NCBI GenBank assembly: GCA_965603825.1 | Contig: CBFDEM010000001.1 | Location: 496,001-560,000, forward strand | Direction: 5' to 3' | Origin: Blepharisma stoltei ATCC 30299 | Taxonomy: Eukaryota; Protista; Ciliophora | Length of the DNA stretch: 64,000 bases | Shown here: positions 3,601 through 32,384 of the stretch, piece after piece | Layout: each line of letters opens with the position of its first letter | How positions within the stretch are numbered: position 1 is the stretch's first letter | Translations under genes and position numbers: made by a program | The notes under the pieces: model-generated | The model's input: only the letters and a program-made list of their open reading frames with translations | What the model was told of the DNA's origin: nothing | The model's database searches: none

Positions 3601-6600
3601 CCCTGCTCAGCTAAATAAAATTTTTTATTCCACTTGCTCACATTCATATCAAGTTTTCTAATTTCATTTTCAAACCTTTTTCTTTTATCTTGGTACTGCT
3701 TATTATGCTTTATACGCTTATTATTAAAATGTTGTGCCATTTCAAAGCCAATCCTTTTTGACTGGACATAGATTTTTTGCCTTTGCGTCCTCATGAAGTC
3801 TTGATAGTCTTGGCTTTTCATCATCCGATACATGATATATAAAAACGCGAACGTAAACACTTTAAACCTTACTAAATTTCTTCTTTCAGATAAATCTGAA
3901 GGCTCATCATCTTCTCCTGCACTTCAAAGTCGAAAAATCCCAAAGGCAAGAATTCAATTTCTGAATTTATCATCATGAATATACGCTGATGGGATTTGGT
4001 ATATCATTTGCAATGTAAGATCAACTAATAAGCAGACTAAGAAATAATTCCTTAAATATTTTAGATAGGAATTCCAGCTTTCTTCGTTTCTTATAACTTC
4101 ATTTGCTTTAAAAATAAAAATAAGGCAAAATAGGCAATATAAACTGGAAACAACTCCATAACTGAGACTGATAAATATTAGTACAAAAATAAGGATCAGG
4201 ATGTGGGACATGTTATACATGGCTTTTTTAACAAATTTAAAAATTTTTCTTCCTCTAGTTTTTCGGGTGATGTTAGTATCAGATGAAGAATGAGACTGAC
4301 TTAGCTTAGGCTCTATACTGTCTTCAAAGCCTTCTAGTTCGCTTTCTCTGGTCGATAAAAATGTATAATAGCCTAAAATAAATAAAAACGTCAATAAATC
4401 ATAAAAAATGCTGTGTAACTGAGAAATAGAGGTCCCAAGATTCAAAAATGTTGCATAATCTTTGGTTCTTCAGTCAATATTATTGTATCAAGGAGTATCA
4501 AAAGGCTTATAGGTTACATGAGGCATTTTATGAGGCGAATTACCTTTTTGAATATTGCTCAAAATCAGTGTATATTGTGTGATACACATAAAAATTATAA
4601 CAATATACAAAAATAGTGTCCTATAATAAGGTGATTTTATATAGATTGAAACAAAGACTGATACTACATAAGTCAATCCTACAAAAGTAAGCTTGGAAAA
4701 TGCCATTAAAAGCATAAATAAAGGTATCATAGATTCAGCAAAAACTCTCATGAAGTTCAAAAATTTTATCAATATTTTTATTTTTTCAAAAGCACTGATT
4801 TCTTTATTCAGAATTCTCCTATTCATCATATACTCCAAACAATGTCTCTCTATTATTAGCAGAATAGCAATAATAATATATCCATAATTTTCTGAAATTA
4901 TAAAACTATTATCACTCTTTTTTGTAAATCCAGAAAAAAAATACAGCCATATTATATTATCATATGCAATTTCGTGGAAAATCAGCCTTGTTATCATAAA
5001 GCACGCATATGAAATTACCACATAAATTAATGTGAAATACCATAACACGTTTCAGCAATATGATCTAATTTTGTGTTCCTTTGCTAAATTTCTTCTTTCT
5101 AAGCTTAGAGATACTCTTGTAAAATAATAACCAAGATAAGCGCATGAAATGCAAATTGATATCAAATAAATATTCATTGAGATAGATAGCCTCCAGTAAA
5201 CTGAAAATATTGAGATAGTCAAATAAATAAAAAATGGAAAAAATTCTTCGAAATAATTGAAAAATTTAATTGATTTTTCTTCAGGCTTTCTTGATAAATT
5301 CACTTTAATTATGCCTGATAAAAGTCCAATGTCATCAAAAATCCCTCCATCTGAATTCCCATAATTTATATTATCTTCTTTTTTAAACGCTTTTGCCCCA
5401 AGCACAGTCACTATAAGCAGAATACAATCAGACACCATGCTCCCATATAAAGTGCTAGAACTAAACACTTCTAAGCCAAACAAAGGATACTGCTTTACAT
5501 CATAAAAAAATGGCAAAAATTGATACAAATATCTAATAACCAGTATTATGCCACTGATATATTCTAATATAAATCATATTTTTCTTACAAGAAAATAATT
5601 TTTTCCAACCTTGAGCTCCAAAGGACTTCTTAAGTGAATAATCATAAAAGATGCAACTATAAGCAGCCTAATAAAATTAAGCAAATTTAGTGAAGATACC
5701 ATAACGGTGATCATTATTACAGAGTAAAGCACCCAAACTTCAGTTAAAAAATATCACTCATATATAAGCACCAATACTTTTACTAAAAGAGGATGCTGCA
5801 CAGATACATTGACTCTGTTAAATTGTTGAAAAAGAATTGAAAAAGTAGTCGACCGATACGCTTTGAGCTGCATAGACGCAGAAACTAAAAGAATCCATAC
5901 AAGATAGTCATAAGGAATTATTGAATTTTTGAGTGTTAATTCAGAACGATTAGCTGGCATGCCTACCAGCCTTAAATAGTTTCTAGGAATATAATCTGTA
6001 AATTTCAATGGAAAAGCAAGAATTCATATATACCGAAATAATAGTAAAAACATTGTGTAAATTACCAAAGATGTCCAATGATTTTTTGCGAGCTTTGTGT
6101 TAAGCATAAATATTAAACAGATAATCATAAATCCAGTATGAAGCAAATTGATATCTGAGAGACCAACCACAAAGAGAACGCATAAGGAAAGTTTATCAGC
6201 GTTTTCAACTATTATTCTTACAAAAAGTCCTACAACTGATTTATCTTTATCTTTCAAGTGCTTATCTCTTTTTTTCCTCTGTAGAATATTATTTAGGTAT
6301 AAAAATAATAATATGGTTAGCAGCTGAAAAGCAATTTCCAAAGGCGGGATTTTTAATAGGCATATGCCAAATACTTCTGATACATCAATTTGGAATAAAT
6401 TTATAATATAAAACCCAAAGAAATTCAAAATAAGGATAGGAAACAAAGAATATTTAGACACTTGCAAAATCCTTTTTAAATCATAATCTAAAAACGAGTA
6501 AAAAAGCCACAGCATCAGCAAGATCCCTACAAAGCTCCGATAGCGGATAATCCATGAAAAGATCAAAACCCTAGCAAAAAAGTAGACTACAGAAACAGAA

Positions 6601-28902: not shown

Positions 28903-30141
28903 CTATTTTTCTGTGTTTTCCACTATATCTTTAAAACGATTTTTCAAGTCTGCTACAAATGACTTTATATTTTTATCCATTAAAAAATTTTCTCTATATT
29001 CATCAAGCTTTTTATTAGACCTTCCGCTTTTGATTTGATTTTGGTACTCTTTCAGCTTTTCCTGGCTAAAAGGAACAGGACTTTTTCTAGGACGAGGATT
29101 ATCTTCCTCAGAAGTATCAAGATGATCATTAGACGGTTCTGTCTGCACATATTGCACTAAATCATCTATTTTCCCTCGGCTTGTTTTTGCGGCGAGGTAT
29201 TTTCTATTATGAAAAGTATAGTGAGCTTGCTTATCATTTTTTGGCTTTTTCTCAATATTTTTGTTTCTTTCAGTTGCTGGCATCCTAGGACCATTTGATG
29301 ACGGAGGTTTTGATTCAGGAGTTTTTGCTCTTAAAAGAAAAGGTGAAAGTTCTCTATTTTCAATAAAAGGTGATTTACTTTTGTTTTCTGCTCTGACAAT
29401 GATCCTTTTGAAGTTTTCATTTCTCTCTTTATTTCTCAGCCTTGTTTTTCTGAAATTGCTAGTCTTGACGGCTGAATCATACGCATTTTTAAGATTATCA
29501 ATAACAGAATGGCCTTTGGATAAATATTTTTCTGCGAAATCGACAGATCTTCTATAATAATCAAGCGATTCTTCATACTAAATAAACACTACTCTTTTTA
29601 AATATTCCATTTCAACTGCAACATTATGAAAAGCAATTGCTAATATTGGCGCTCTTATATCAATTGTCGCAAAATCTTGCTCATAAGCAGCTTGGAATGC
29701 TTCATCCTGGATCAAAATAACAGCTTGCATTGCATATTCTAAAGCTTTGTCATGCTTCCCTATAAGGGAACTCACTGCACATAGATTCAGATGAACATCA
29801 CCTGTGGGGTTAATAGATAAGGCGTCTTGTAAAAATTTTAATGCAGTTCGATATTTTGCTTGCTTTTTATAATAGCATGCGTAGTTATTATAAGTAGCAG
29901 AAAGCAAATCTGGATTTGCTCCTGAGAGCTCTTCTGCTTTTTTTAACAGACTTAAGGCTTCATTTTGAGCGCCTTGATGTAACTTATCCATTGCATGCAA
30001 GTTATAAAGCTCACAGAGGCTTGTAGTGGTCTCTTGGTATTCGGCACTACGTTTATCAAGTGTAATAAAATCTTGTTCTAGGATTTCGATGGCTTGCTTG
30101 TAATTTCCTTCTCTTTTAAGAACATTTATCTTTTCTTCCAT
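28903..30141 (-). CDS. TPR-repeat protein with basic low-complexity tail, 407 aa, one intron
   Basis: TYNNYACYYKK, VHLNLCAVSSLIGKHDKALEYA, LAIAFHNVAVEMEYLKR|YEESLDYY; same frame as track ORF 28903..29283. Confidence 0.85.
29578..29592 (-). other. 15-nt intron in the TPR gene
   Basis: GTAGTGTTTATTTAG; removes an in-frame TAG within a TPR helix pair. Confidence 0.88.
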
Positions 30142-30282
30142 AGATACTTATTTGCAACATATTAAATGCATTATGATGTCAAAAAGGAAAATTATATTTA
30201 TTGAAAGAAACAGTATTTAGCTTTAATAAAATATCTATAAGAAGCTTAAAATATTTAATAAATATAAAAGTGACAAAAATAA

Positions 30283-30708
30283 TTATGTTAAATTTTTATG
30301 CCTGAGATAAAGGTGATTTCTACTATCACGTCTTTTAATTCCACGCTCATCTGCACACGCTTCACATTGATAGAGAACATTTCCTTTTTCCAACGATCCT
30401 TGCCCTGGGATAACTCTAAAAGATATTTTCTTCCCATTATCATAATTTTGAATAAGCAGTCTTGTAGGCAGAATCCTATTATTTTCAAAAATCCTGATAT
30501 TAGCTGGCAGAACATTTCCTTTTGCTATATCATTTATATATTTAAGCCTCATAAAAAATTCAGTGGAGTCTCTCATTGACAGCTTCAGGTCATCTAAGAC
30601 TGAGAAAAAATCTTTAGAAGAGAAAAACAAGGCATCTAGATCGCAGCCAAGCTCATCAAGTCTTTTGATATGCTTTGGGTCATTTCCTACAATATAATCT
30701 AAATTCAT
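30283..30708 (-). CDS. Orphan-family paralog 1, 141 aa: putative SAM-like N-terminus plus C-x2-C-x13-H-x4-H zinc finger
   Basis: Intact ATG..TAA ORF; aligns without gaps to the ORFs at 30748 and 31158; CEAC...H LYLR H. Confidence 0.85.
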   Translation of the reverse strand: MNLDYIVGNDPKHIKRLDELGCDLDALFFSSKDFFSVLDDLKLSMRDSTEFFMRLKYINDIAKGNVLPANIRIFENNRILPTRLLIQNYDNGKKISFRVIPGQGSLEKGNVLYQCEACADERGIKRRDSRNHLYLRHKNLT

Positions 30709-30747
30709 TATAAGGGGGGTGTATTCTAAAAAATCTGGCTTTTTATA

Positions 30748-31161
30748 ATGGATTTAAACTATATCGTAGGAAACGACAAGAAGAAGCTTAAAAAGTTTGA
30801 TGAGCATGGATATGACCTTGAGTCCTTATTTATCATTTCCAAGGATTTTTTCTCAATTTGTGATGATCTCAATCTGTCTCATAAAGAAGCATCAGAATTT
30901 TTTATCAGGGTCAAAATAATGAAAGAAGCTTCTGAAGGCCAGCCATTCCCTCCAAATCTCCTCATGTATGAAAATAGCAAAAAATGCCCTACAAGAATCA
31001 GCATTGTCAATAACGATACTTATAATAAAGTATTATTCAAAATTGTCCCAGGCCAAGGAAAATGTGAAAAACTCAATGTTCTTTTTAGATGCGAGATGTG
31101 CAGAGAAGATTCCCAAATTAAAAGAAGTGACTTAAAGATACATAGTAATATTTTATTTTAA
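30748..31161 (+). CDS. Orphan-family paralog 2, 137 aa; zinc finger lacks the last His
   Basis: MDLNYIVGND, EFFIRVK, PTRI, IVPGQG, CEMC...H then stop. Confidence 0.85.
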   Translation: MDLNYIVGNDKKKLKKFDEHGYDLESLFIISKDFFSICDDLNLSHKEASEFFIRVKIMKEASEGQPFPPNLLMYENSKKCPTRISIVNNDTYNKVLFKIVPGQGKCEKLNVLFRCEMCREDSQIKRSDLKIHSNILF

Positions 31162-31583
31162 TTAAGATTTTTATGTTTGGCAAATATATGCCTTTTAGTA
31201 TCGAATCTTTTTATTGCAGTATCTTCTTGGCATTCTTCACATTTATAAAGAATGTTCCCTTTTCTGACTGATCCTTGGCCTGGAATAATTCTAAAATATA
31301 GTTTATTTCCTGTCTCTTTATTCTGAACAATAAGTCTTGTAGGTAGAGTTTTGTTATTTTCATAAATTTGGATATTTTCTGCAAGATTACTTCCTTGAGA
31401 TGCATCATGGATATATTTAAGCCTCATAAAGAATTCTGCAGAATTTCTTAAGCTGAGCTTAAGATCGTTCATTACTGAAAAAAGGTCGCTGGACATAGCA
31501 AATAGGGAGTTCATGGTGCATTCAAGTTCTTCAAATCTTTGAGTGTGCCTTAAATTATTTCCTACAAGATAATTTAAATCCAT
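31158..31583 (-). CDS. Orphan-family paralog 3, 141 aa
   Basis: About 55% identical to paralog 1 by hand count (77/141, ungapped); CEEC...H IFAK H. Confidence 0.85.
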   Translation of the reverse strand: MDLNYLVGNNLRHTQRFEELECTMNSLFAMSSDLFSVMNDLKLSLRNSAEFFMRLKYIHDASQGSNLAENIQIYENNKTLPTRLIVQNKETGNKLYFRIIPGQGSVRKGNILYKCEECQEDTAIKRFDTKRHIFAKHKNLN

Positions 31584-31727
31584 TATAAATGGGGACTAAA
31601 AAATAAATTAATTAATTTGGGAAAATATAATCAAAAATAAAATATGCTACTATTAAACACTGATGTTTATTTATAAAATTAAGCTTGAGAATATGAGCTT
31701 TAGAAATTAAGAAATAAATTATGTTAA

Positions 31728-32384
31728 TTAATCAGCTATGTCATAGACAATGTCTCTTTTTGTTAATGAAGACATATAAATATAAAAAAATTTCAATATC
31801 AAAATCACAGGCATGATACAAATAATTAAATAGCACGATTTGAAATAAAAACTAAAGCTAAATGTTGAATTCTTTGGGCAATTTTCTCAAAAATCTGGAA
31901 TAGTTTCAACAACACATAGTGCCTCAAAAAGAGTTGCTAATGGTATAAGAATAAAAAATGCATTATATTTCAGCCAAAATATCCAATTTATCAACCCATA
32001 AAATTTCGTAAGAAAATATAAATAATCAGTGATATCAATTAAAGCTCACGATAAAACAGCTCCAATAGGCCAATTACTCTATATTAATCCTACTCATGGT
32101 ATCAAATCCCTTATCCCAAAAAATATCAAAATTCTGACACAGTTTTGGACTATATTAGGCCAAATATTGCAAGATAGTCTATAATACTTGTGAAAGACCT
32201 GAATATACCTTACTTCAACAATACTTAATCCAAGCATAATCTCTAGTAATCTCCTAATTTTCACATCATATAAGATTTCAACTGTTTTGTTCTCCACAAC
32301 ATACTCGCACGCGAATCACAGCACAGAAATTCATCCCACAAGCTGTACGCTATTAAAAATCGCCAAATAATCTTCAAATTTCAT
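31728..32384 (-). CDS. 3-hydroxyacyl-CoA dehydratase (HACD/PTPLA/Phs1)-like membrane protein, divergent, ~208 aa, two introns
   Basis: YLAIFNSVQLVG-W(TGA), E-VFH...QNCVR, S-W(TGA)-ALIDITDY, WLKYNAFFILIPLATLFE; ATG 32384, TAA 31728-31730. Confidence 0.8.
32079..32093 (-). other. 15-nt intron in the HACD-like gene
   Basis: GTAGGATTAATATAG; removes an in-frame TAG. Confidence 0.85.
32199..32213 (-). other. Probable 15-nt stop-free intron in the HACD-like gene
   Basis: GTAAGGTATATTCAG fits the consensus with A at position 10; removal restores the family spacing E-x-x-H. Confidence 0.7.

Follow-up and report, generated by a model that had tools for sequence, protein, structure and literature searches.

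Three paralogous genes of Blepharisma stoltei belong to an apparently lineage-restricted heterotrich family with a single predicted C2H2-type zinc finger

Heterotrich ciliates, including Blepharisma and Stentor, serve as models of genome editing and of regeneration in single cells, and much of their proteome is unannotated. In the 64,000-nucleotide stretch of B. stoltei DNA analyzed here (the window, whose coordinates are used throughout), three small related genes are packed into 1.3 kb. What kind of protein do they encode, and what might these proteins do together? A sequence-only reading of the locus had proposed orphan paralogs that combine a SAM-like domain, a beta region and a zinc finger and assemble into one nucleic acid-binding complex. 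The analysis defines an abundant, conserved and apparently lineage-restricted heterotrich family with a confident structural model, in which two predicted modules without a described counterpart are joined to a single C2H2 finger.

The cassette contains three intact open reading frames of 141, 137 and 141 residues (copies 1, 2 and 3, named w1, w2 and w3) in the order (−)(+)(−) at positions 30283–31583, each with an ATG start codon and a TAA stop codon. Its features are as follows.

30265–30282, − strand: short 3′ UTR of w1, with a probable poly(A) site at its end; the X4 contig stops at 30265, at a loose run of eight T
30283–30708, − strand: w1 coding sequence, 141 residues, TAA stop included; full Cys-Cys-His-His finger; pI 9.0
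30709–30747, no strand: divergent spacer of 39 bp that separates the start codons of w1 and w2
30748–31161, + strand: w2 coding sequence, 137 residues, TAA stop included; the most divergent copy, without the fourth zinc ligand and without the upstream C-run
31158–31161, no strand: 4-bp convergent overlap of the w2 and w3 frames at both stop codons (ORF coordinates)
31158–31583, − strand: w3 coding sequence, 141 residues, TAA stop included; full finger; sister of w1
31161–31253, − strand: w3 residues 111–141, predicted beta-beta-alpha C2H2-type finger (C115, C118, H132 and H137; AF2 model and profile matches)
31254–31397, − strand: w3 residues 63–110, linker and predicted three-strand beta meander (AF2 model; conserved P81, R83 and F97)
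31398–31583, − strand: w3 residues 1–62, predicted acidic N-terminal helical module (AF2 model, block pLDDT 87–97)
31584–31594, − strand: w3 upstream element, a C-run of four bases and then ATTTATA immediately before the ATG (oriented upstream sequences)

The three proteins are 46–55% identical (47% between copies 1 and 2 and 55% between copies 1 and 3) and align with zero internal gaps, w2 being four residues shorter near the C-terminus. Using copy 3 as the query against the whole genome, copies 1 and 2 are recovered at E values of 1.8e-52 and 6.2e-37, far beyond chance. The invariant columns of the trio comprise M1, L3, Y5, V7, G8 and N9; D40, L41, L43 and S44; E50, F51, F52, R54 and K56; P81, T82 and R83; P101, G102, Q103 and G104; and C115, E116, C118 and H132. 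Within the trio, the second histidine (H137) is restricted to copies 1 and 3. The sequence-only reading described this layout accurately: the ORF list bears out three intronless frames, with which the RNA-like contigs are collinear where they cover; the gap-free alignment and the ∼55% identity of copies 1 and 3 are reproduced; and each of the shared blocks it named is found among the invariant columns. Because the w2 and w3 frames overlap at their stop codons, their mRNAs must overlap antisense at the 3′ ends.

Four sequencing runs (X1–X4) behave as RNA: two 15-nt introns are missing from their contigs, the intergenic DNA is left uncovered and a poly(A)-like end is present. The cassette contigs reach depths of 78–102, 570–599, 78–88 and 124–138 in the four runs, compared with ∼9 in each for a neighboring gene, a ratio of 8–68 obtained from contig depth, which is a poor measure of expression. 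In all four runs, w1 is covered from 30265/30271 to 30588/30610, with the 5′ 100–120 nt uncovered, and the w2/w3 junction is spanned by a single RNA-like contig. The w2 coverage starts at 30752 in X1, 30772 in X2 and 30843 in X3 and X4, and that of w3 extends to 31573–31579 except in X2, where it reaches 31556. The three cassette genes are real and transcribed, and they are transcribed together insofar as their contig depths co-vary across the four runs. NG dN/dS values within the trio range from 0.26 to 0.38 (0.31–0.38 for w2 versus the other two copies), well below 1 and with dS above 1; across all seven pairs with measurable dS, each above 1, the range is 0.10–0.38. Judged from these substitution ratios, the three genes are selectively maintained.

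The B. stoltei macronuclear genome (41.46 Mb in 64 contigs as searched; described as a 41-Mb genome with UGA read as Trp and introns of 15 or 16 nt, PMC9942806) contains 11 family loci, including the window trio. An exhaustive HMMER search with a limit of E≤0.001 returns 68 sequences, which with few exceptions are full-length unnamed proteins of 120–145 residues. They include one MMETSP transcript and SteCoe_7601 (OMJ90113.1), so that Stentor coeruleus has at least one member. Several dozen unnamed environmental clusters belong to the family. The term orphan was thus too strong, given that members occur in S. coeruleus and among many environmental sequences, although its range found so far comprises only Blepharisma, Stentor and unnamed environmental relatives and is apparently lineage-restricted. 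SteCoe_7601 and the B. stoltei proteins labeled ‘C2H2-type domain-containing’ (e.g. CAG9311071.1) are true members that agree in length and in their three-part architecture, but they are only 24–30% identical to the window copies and carry no functional annotation. No literature on SteCoe_7601 was found, and the family is absent from the text and appendix of PMC9942806, in which gene-ID prefixes for the region, based on a guessed gene-number range, are unmatched. Two long proteins with weak deep-search matches (P0070 and P0072) are spurious and correspond to DUF11 and TPR/STAND repeat proteins. Longer ‘isoforms’ of P0021, P0086 and P0089 were rejected as fusions and look like upstream read-through by the gene caller.

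In the family tree, w1 and w3 are recent sisters (SH-aLRT 98), and w1, w2 and w3 form a five-gene B. stoltei clade with a divergent pair on contig 34. The similarity between contigs 1 and 34 ends at the family genes and the flanks are unlike, and a segmental duplication was accordingly rejected. As far as flanks and tree indicate, the five-gene clade is specific to B. stoltei and was built by gene-sized duplications. The earlier idea of an old triplication kept under selection therefore holds for the selection but not for the isolated triplet, as the genome has 11 members and the contig 34 pair falls within the clade. Duplications of gene size without flanks, along with a few sub-threshold Pfam matches to transposase-associated zinc modules, would also be expected of ORFs that arose by chance, of duplicates undergoing decay or of transposon remnants, all devoid of function. 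Such an origin is extremely improbable in view of the low dN/dS, the strong RNA coverage, the homologues in Stentor and other species and the 11 B. stoltei frames, all intact, in which the sole internal TGA codons are read as Trp.

AF2 models were built from 10 and 58 sequences (pLDDT 82 and 90.8, respectively) and have the same topology. The N-terminal module opens with a conserved Met-Asp-Leu-x-Tyr motif and is predicted to contain four helices (residues 3–6, 11–19, 24–40 and 45–62), the two long ones being antiparallel. Three strands (residues 71–75, 83–88 and 94–99) then form a meander, in agreement with the beta middle region noted earlier, and F97 is kept in 94% of the 58 sequences. The finger packs with the meander into a single compact alpha+beta unit. 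A family protein of ∼125–145 residues is thus modeled as a four-helix acidic module, a three-strand meander and one C2H2-type finger. The median pI is 5.9 for the family and 4.6 for its N-terminal part; only w1 and w3 reach 9.0.

Comparison with described proteins leaves the finger as the only part of a known kind; for the remainder, neither a Pfam family nor a solved fold is matched. Pfam is empty at threshold for the trio, 10 B. stoltei paralogs and the 58 members, and none of its families is matched by more than 4 of the 58, so that no described family spans the whole protein, as the sequence-only reading had anticipated. A PDB sequence search with a three-sequence profile gave nothing useful. 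Among structural searches, Foldseek against the PDB gives a best E of 0.4 over the two models, and VIA-align against PDB representatives gives best Z values of 4.5–4.7, to SH2-like parts and helical hairpins, where Z below 5 lies under its chance range. The shape search of the ESM Atlas yields TM values of 0.41 or less, and the N-terminal module alone has no usable named match there, the structure rows depending on a poor Atlas model.

The proposal that the N-terminal 60 residues form a SAM domain, through which the three products hetero-polymerise into one nucleic acid-binding complex, draws on some resemblances. The module is all-helical, ∼60 residues long and located beside a zinc finger, and on inspection a conserved Arg-Leu-Lys in its last helix recalls the SAM helix-5 motif. 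An hhalign comparison of 51 N-terminal modules with 12 genuine B. stoltei SAM_1 domains detects a faint similarity over SAM helices 2–4 (probability 38%, P 3.3e-4, 31 columns; query residues 12–45 versus SAM 16–46). Its score of 21.7 exceeds 13 for reversed controls and beats 199 of 200 block-shuffled SAM profiles, and a SAP control scores 8.6 with a probability of 0.3%. The co-varying contig depth of the three genes would also suit a common complex. Direct searches argue against this assignment. With the SAM_1 model, the B. stoltei genome yields 38 SAM domains, none of which falls at any of the 11 family loci, and Pfam SAM families are matched by 0 of the 58 members even at E≤1. In the pLDDT 90.8 model, inspection shows a single helix at residues 24–40, a stretch that the hhalign register aligns with SAM helices 3 and 4; the module has four predicted helices rather than the compact five-helix arrangement. 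No SAM chain is among the best 50 of 48,161 PDB representatives in two whole-protein searches (Z cut 3.3–3.4), and the best Z values of the N-terminal module, 4.0–4.2, are to unrelated helical hairpins. A complex prediction for w3 and w1, run without family alignments, gave an ipSAE of 0.00, which is evidence neither way. A SAM domain and a SAM-mediated complex are improbable. Polyhomeotic is a Polycomb protein with SAM plus zinc finger, but the order of helical module and finger is reversed in the family. A SAP domain at residues 24–62 was also rejected (0.3% probability in hhalign against four B. stoltei SAP motifs).

At the C-terminus, C115, C118 and H132 are invariant in the 58 sequences, and the fourth ligand, H137, is a histidine in 77% and is missing in w2 and at least one relative. 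The two histidines are separated by four or three residues in most members, and the gap between the second cysteine and the first histidine is 10–13 residues (13 in the window copies). The model places a strand at 112–115, a bridge at 124–125 and a helix at 126–136 (block pLDDT 83–94 over 111–140). Profile positions 108–136 match solved C2H2 fingers, including ZBTB17 (E 5.9e-4), ZFAT, ZFY, LYAR, ADR1 and CTCF, to E 0.1. Moreover, the deep search matched a multi-C2H2 protein through the finger part of the family, and the language-model neighbors in ESM Atlas features are C2H2 clusters with scores under 0.9. By its ligands and by the model, the C-terminus is one ordinary predicted C2H2-type beta-beta-alpha zinc finger. 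It shares with classical TFIIIA/Krueppel-type fingers (ZBTB17/Miz-1, ZFY, ADR1 and CTCF) the Cys-x2-Cys ... His-x3-4-His pattern, an aromatic residue two positions before the first cysteine, hydrophobic residues at two core positions and the predicted beta-hairpin and helix, in addition to the profile-level similarity. It differs in being single and fused into a larger sheet with the preceding meander, and no member reaches the Pfam C2H2 gathering score (best, zf-H2C2_5 with 11.9 bits against 27). BED-type fingers occur in hAT transposases and chromatin insulator proteins and resemble the family in the Cys-x2-Cys ... His-x3-5-His pattern and in beta strands ahead of the finger. Nonetheless, zf-BED does not appear in the Pfam listing of any member, and the Hermes BED domain is matched only at Foldseek E 1.4 and TM 0.14–0.23. 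Of the C2H2/BED-like finger proposed earlier, the C2H2 part is supported and the BED part is not.

The start codons of the cassette share a short upstream sequence. TTATA lies directly before the ATG in all three genes, as first noticed from the sequence, and in none of the 39 other window ORFs of at least 120 residues. In the divergent spacer, the w1 side consists of a six-base C-run (a G-run on the + strand at 30714–30719), TTATA and the w1 ATG, and the w2 side presents TTTTTATA before the w2 ATG. C5 runs are rare in the window. The last 30 nt ahead of the ATG include a C-run and then TATA in 7 of the 11 B. stoltei members and in two environmental homologues, versus 0 of the 39 other long window ORFs (7/11 versus 0/39; Fisher p 3e-6). 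Because this oriented element is common to most members of one subfamily and is kept despite saturated silent sites, it suggests common regulation of the paralogs.

Three environmental relatives (P0047, P0044 and P0113) carry a histone-H3-like N-terminal tail. Residues 1–28 of P0047 share 71% identity with the H3 tail of B. stoltei (pairwise E 5e-11), and the P0044 tail is 46–54% identical over five H3 copies. All three proteins have a Cys in place of the family Met1, which leaves the H3-like Met as the necessary start of translation. Behind the tail comes the family module rather than a histone fold, and Pfam Histone is not matched in the three relatives. The H3-like tail is absent from the three window proteins, and the fusions may say little about the window genes because they belong to a remote subfamily with a long branch.

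No homology tying the family to a function was found. The reading that we prefer, at a probability of roughly 40–45%, is that the family members may be small chromatin- or nucleic acid-binding adaptors in the nucleus. Contact with DNA, RNA or a histone surface would be made through the beta/finger unit, and the acidic helical module would engage a partner protein, which could be a second member of the family. Of the two roles first suggested, a chromatin-related one is supported indirectly by the H3-tail fusions of relatives, and a developmental one is unsupported. This tentative reading draws on three observations: a lone C2H2 finger rarely acts alone; the H3-like tails of three relatives are a nuclear or chromatin signature; and the C-run/TATA element is conserved in most of one subfamily. 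Against it, the family is not basic overall (the median pI given above), which is unusual for abundant DNA binders. Nor does the finger helix point to diversified DNA specificities, as its positions vary rather little among the paralogs (K130 in 75%).

The conservation of finger surface residues among paralogs would also suit cytoplasmic or cortical protein–protein adaptors, whose zinc site would serve structure alone and be unrelated to nucleic acids. The acidic N-terminal module, the high contig depth, as for structural proteins, and a weak likeness of the C-terminal half to peptide-binding alpha+beta domains (SH2 and RWD/UBC-like; Z 3.4–4.7) point the same way. Since these Z values fall under the VIA-align chance range, the finger profile resembles DNA-binding C2H2 fingers and the H3-tail fusions point to the nucleus, such a cytoplasmic or cortical role is unlikely. 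Alternatively, the fingers could be of the RNA-binding matrin/JAZ/U1 kind and recognize double-stranded or small RNA, for example in ciliate developmental small-RNA pathways. Clusters of zf-met and zf-C2H2_jaz are among the language-model neighbors (0.87–0.88, where a score below 0.9 is a lead only), a LYAR-type finger is among the profile matches, the overall charge is acidic to neutral and the w2 and w3 transcripts are themselves convergent and overlapping. Matrin-type fingers have a longer His spacing, and the His-x3-4-His pattern of the family suits classical fingers better. In addition, zf-met and JAZ are absent among the Pfam families listed, and the family is unnamed among the development-induced genes of PMC9942806 and its appendix, as searched with the guessed gene-number range. 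An RNA-binding role of this matrin/JAZ/U1 kind is thus quite unlikely.

The nuclear-adaptor reading can be extended to a heterotrich-specific class of non-histone chromatin proteins, in which a new helical module and a beta/C2H2 unit would dock on nucleosomes or DNA, the H3 tail would have been gained in one lineage and the paralogs would be co-regulated, perhaps autoregulated. Taken as a whole, this joint scheme is a long shot. If it were true, the H3-tailed proteins would display or decoy H3 tail marks, and members might bind their own C-run/TATA element as autoregulated small chromatin adaptors; such self-binding might occur, given that G/C runs are a frequent target of C2H2 fingers. Should the chromatin link fail, the family would simply add to the lineage-specific families of small zinc-finger proteins and be of modest interest. 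The natural H3-tail fusions and the conserved upstream element are two testable leads, and both can be followed directly because RNAi works in Stentor and a Blepharisma RNA-seq time course is published. This B. stoltei series, PRJEB45374 with runs ERR6049461–ERR6049485, comprises starved and gamone-treated samples and times from 0 to 38 h. Genome-wide, the C-run/TATA element is modestly above control (47 versus 30 and 63 versus 56). A tie to histone genes was rejected, the element being carried by 1 of 45 histone-fold loci. It is also found upstream of unrelated genes, such as those for a dynamin, the RNR large subunit, H2A, a BAH-PHD protein and a NIF phosphatase.

The cassette at 30283–31583 is a transcribed, constrained cluster of a C2H2-finger protein family of heterotrich ciliates, and its anatomy is well established. 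It contains three small paralogous genes in (-)(+)(-) orientation:

30283–30708, minus strand, w1, ORF of 141 aa
30748–31161, plus strand, w2, ORF of 137 aa
31158–31583, minus strand, w3, ORF of 141 aa

The ORF list and the alignment bear out the sequence-only reading of three related 137–141-aa frames. The w1–w3 proteins align without an internal gap, with w2 and w3 being 47% and 55% identical to w1, respectively, and every conserved block named in that reading is found in the alignment. All three ATGs are directly preceded by TTATA, also as first described, and this placement occurs at 0 of the 39 other window ORFs of at least 120 aa. In a search of the whole genome, matches among w1–w3 exhibit E values of 1.8e-52 and 6.2e-37. 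The cassette is very compact. The start codons of the divergent w1 and w2 genes are just 39 bp apart, and the stop codons of the convergent w2 and w3 frames, on opposite strands, share 4 bp (31158–31161), so that the 3' ends of the two abundant mRNAs must have complementary sequences. w2 stops four residues short and lacks both the fourth zinc ligand and an upstream C-run; it may be drifting or using a three-ligand zinc site. The fourth ligand is also lost in the relative P0027.

Nei–Gojobori dN/dS ratios, calculated with TGA read as Trp, show that the family genes are under purifying selection. The ratios within the trio (0.26 for w1/w3, 0.31 for w1/w2 and 0.38 for w2/w3) are all well below 1, in agreement with the earlier proposal that the trio was kept under selection, and those against the contig-34 paralog C34b are 0.10–0.33. 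dS exceeds 1 throughout, and four other pairs have reached saturation; since saturation leads to underestimates of dS, the ratios are probably overstated. With the highest dN/dS in the trio, w2 is the least constrained copy. Junk ORFs were excluded as the identity of w1–w3.

Transcription was assessed in four runs with coded identities (X1–X4), whose RNA label is only a guess. At each of 29578 and 32196, exactly 15 nt are missing from the contigs of these runs, which is a B. stoltei intron size, and intergenic DNA is left uncovered, with almost no depth at 30149–30255 and none at 31647–31860. One contig stops at 30265, 18 nt past the w1 stop codon, with eight loose T residues, which fits the poly(A) tail of the w1 mRNA. 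Given the missing introns, the bare intergenic DNA and the poly(A)-like end, X1–X4 behave as RNA. The 29578 intron lies within a TPR-like gene upstream of the cassette (the minus-strand ORF 29578–30141 continues past the intron), and the 32196 intron lies within a weakly covered gene at about 31926–32383.

Contig depth in X1–X4 (a poor measure of expression; the two-gene w2+w3 contig is not one transcript)
w1: X1 102, X2 570, X3 88, X4 138
w2+w3: X1 102, X2 599, X3 78, X4 124
neighbouring TPR-like gene: X1 8.9, X2 8.7, X3 9.0, X4 9.4

Within the limits of contig depth, the trio clearly exceeds its neighbour in transcription, and the w1 and w2+w3 depths co-vary over the four runs. The 5' 100–120 nt of w1 and most of the 39-bp spacer (30589–30751) are in no contig of any run. 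The first bases of w2 are also uncovered (4 in X1, 24 in X2 and 95 in X3 and X4), and the w3 5' end is covered to 4–10 nt from the ATG in three runs. The w1 gap may reflect strain polymorphism in mixed-strain mating samples; repeats were rejected as its cause, as no 21-mer of the stretch recurs in the window.

The genes had been read as an orphan triplication. They are indeed three paralogs, but they are neither orphans nor an isolated triplet. The genome searched comprised 64 contigs totalling 41.46 Mb; for B. stoltei ATCC 30299, the macronuclear genome as published is 41 Mb in size, with UGA encoding Trp and introns mostly of 15 and 16 nt (PMC9942806). Ten family loci were identified by six-frame search, and a profile search added an eleventh, on contig 3, whose frame contains TGA codons for Trp:

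contig 1, three genes, the w1–w3 cassette
contig 34, divergent pair 53 bp apart
contigs 47, 12, 20 and 3, one gene each
contig 48, two genes

A word-based protein search returned only B. stoltei proteins and four unnamed environmental/Logan proteins. When 1.84 billion cluster representatives were searched exhaustively with HMMER, 68 proteins matched at E ≤ 1e-3, 50 of these at E ≤ 1e-10, nearly all of 120–145 aa and aligned end to end. Few members are named, namely the hypothetical protein SteCoe_7601 of Stentor coeruleus, for which no paper mentioning it was found, and one MMETSP transcript. On present evidence, the family is confined to heterotrich ciliates and unnamed relatives.

In a quick IQ-TREE run, w1 and w3 are sisters (SH-aLRT 98) and form with w2 and the contig-34 pair a five-gene B. 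stoltei clade (support 93). Other B. stoltei paralogs pair with outside sequences (C48a with P0007, C20 with P0010 and C3 with P0059), indicating diversification of the family prior to the separation of these lineages. The contig-34 locus and the window resemble each other no further than the family genes, and the duplications were therefore gene-sized. Two further members are encoded at L011:5001-5420 and 5496-5909, from the ENA GROS21 freshwater metagenome contigs (up to 302 kb). This pair, from a heterotrich-like environmental genome, is a direct tandem 75 bp apart with an upstream C-run/TATA element at both genes; local clustering of the family thus recurs in another species in another orientation.

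The C-run/TATA element, an oriented run of 4–6 C with TATA after it in the 30 nt before the ATG, precedes 7 of the 11 B. stoltei family genes and two environmental homologues, compared with 0 of 39 other long window ORFs (Fisher p 3e-6):

window 30709–30747 and 31584–31594
L006/L003 spacer, G000:C34:305954-306006
L005, L007, L008, L009 and L011, upstream of family genes

The 53-bp spacer of the contig-34 divergent pair contains two mirrored copies. The second major subfamily (C20, C3, P0010 and the members with a histone H3-like tail) lacks the element. This element has been kept despite saturated silent sites and is thus probably functional, and a TATA so near the ATG implies very short leaders. 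Two patterns of the element occur 47 and 63 times genome-wide, versus 30 and 56 for reversed controls. Sampled sites (L040–L059) also head genes for dynamin, the ribonucleotide reductase large subunit, histone H2A, a BAH-PHD protein, a NIF-type phosphatase, a PB1/trypsin-like protein and others, and the element is therefore not private to the family. The arrangement may represent an uncommon class of promoter or 5' leader in B. stoltei.

For w3, AlphaFold2 reached a pLDDT of 82 from 10 paralogs; from 58 family members, the value was 90.8 (pTM 0.56) and the topology identical. The N-terminal module (residues 1–62) is predicted to form four helices (3–6, 11–19, 24–40 and 45–62), followed by a β meander (63–110; strands 71–75, 83–88 and 94–99) and a finger (111–141; strand 112–115 and helix 126–136). 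Across the 58 aligned sequences, C115, C118 and H132 never vary, F97 is present in 94%, and most have H137 or a His at the preceding position. Profile positions 108–136 match solved classical C2H2 fingers, with ZBTB17 the best (E 5.9e-4), followed by ZFAT, ZFY, LYAR, ADR1 and CTCF, and the sole genuine non-family protein match is a multi-C2H2 protein. The C-terminal C2H2-type finger proposed from sequence is thereby supported. It is the only part recognised in searches for a characterised family: 0 of 58 members reach the threshold for any Pfam family, and the best Foldseek match in the PDB has an E value of 0.4. Against 48,161 representatives, VIA-align scores fall below the tool's range for chance arrangements both for residues 67–141 with SH2-type domains (best Z 4.7, rmsd 3.5 Å, 63 aligned) and for the N-terminal module with unrelated helical hairpins (best Z 4.0–4.2). 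The novelty is a C2H2 protein with one finger and two accessory modules without a described counterpart.

The sequence-only reading inferred a SAM-like domain at the N-terminus and suggested a possible SAM polymer. Its SAM-like spacing appears to be a real but faint resemblance over SAM helices 2–4. hhalign of 51 N-terminal modules with 12 genuine B. stoltei SAM domains placed module residues 12–45 on SAM 16–46 (probability 38%, P 3.3e-4, 31 columns), with a score of 21.7 versus 13 for reversed controls, exceeding 199 of 200 block-shuffled SAM profiles; a SAP control gave a probability of 0.3%. However, none of the 38 SAM domains detected in the genome by the Pfam SAM_1 model is at a family locus, the confident AlphaFold2 model lacks the five-helix SAM bundle, and SAM chains are not among the best structural matches. 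SAM membership, and with it the polymer, is therefore improbable. Complex prediction of w3 with w1, run without family alignments, yielded an ipSAE of 0.00 in both runs, a score that counts neither way.

The N-terminal module is acidic (median pI 4.6), and the β part and finger are mildly basic (8.2 and 7.8); the whole-protein pI has a family median of 5.9 and is 9.0 in w1 and w3. We infer, at a probability of about 40–45%, that the family proteins are small nuclear adaptors, in which the β/finger unit would contact nucleic acid or a nucleosome surface and the acidic helical module would contact a protein partner. Less probable rivals to this reading, besides the SAM polymer, are RNA-binding finger proteins and cytoplasmic protein adaptors whose zinc site is structural.

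There are two leads on function, the C-run/TATA element and a histone H3-like tail. Three environmental relatives, P0044, P0047 and P0113, carry this N-terminal tail of ~35 residues as an in-frame fusion:

L026:385-891, P0044, H3-tail family member
L027:1955-2464, P0047, H3-tail family member

P0047 residues 1–28 share 71% identity with the B. stoltei H3 tail (pairwise E 5e-11); the heterotrich-type Thr-Pro-Lys-Lys-His stretch is among them. The P0044 tail is 46–54% identical across the five H3 copies compared, and P0113 is 82% identical to P0047 overall. The family initiator Met is Cys in all three proteins, and the tail must therefore be translated together with the module. This fusion, which is natural and conserved, joins the module to a signature of chromatin and nuclear import; however, it lies in a distant subfamily on a long branch of the tree. 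Arg stands in place of H3 Lys4 and Lys9 in P0047 and P0113, and Lys4 is kept in P0044. The L026 and L027 loci have a neighbour in common, which is convergent and about 375 aa long.
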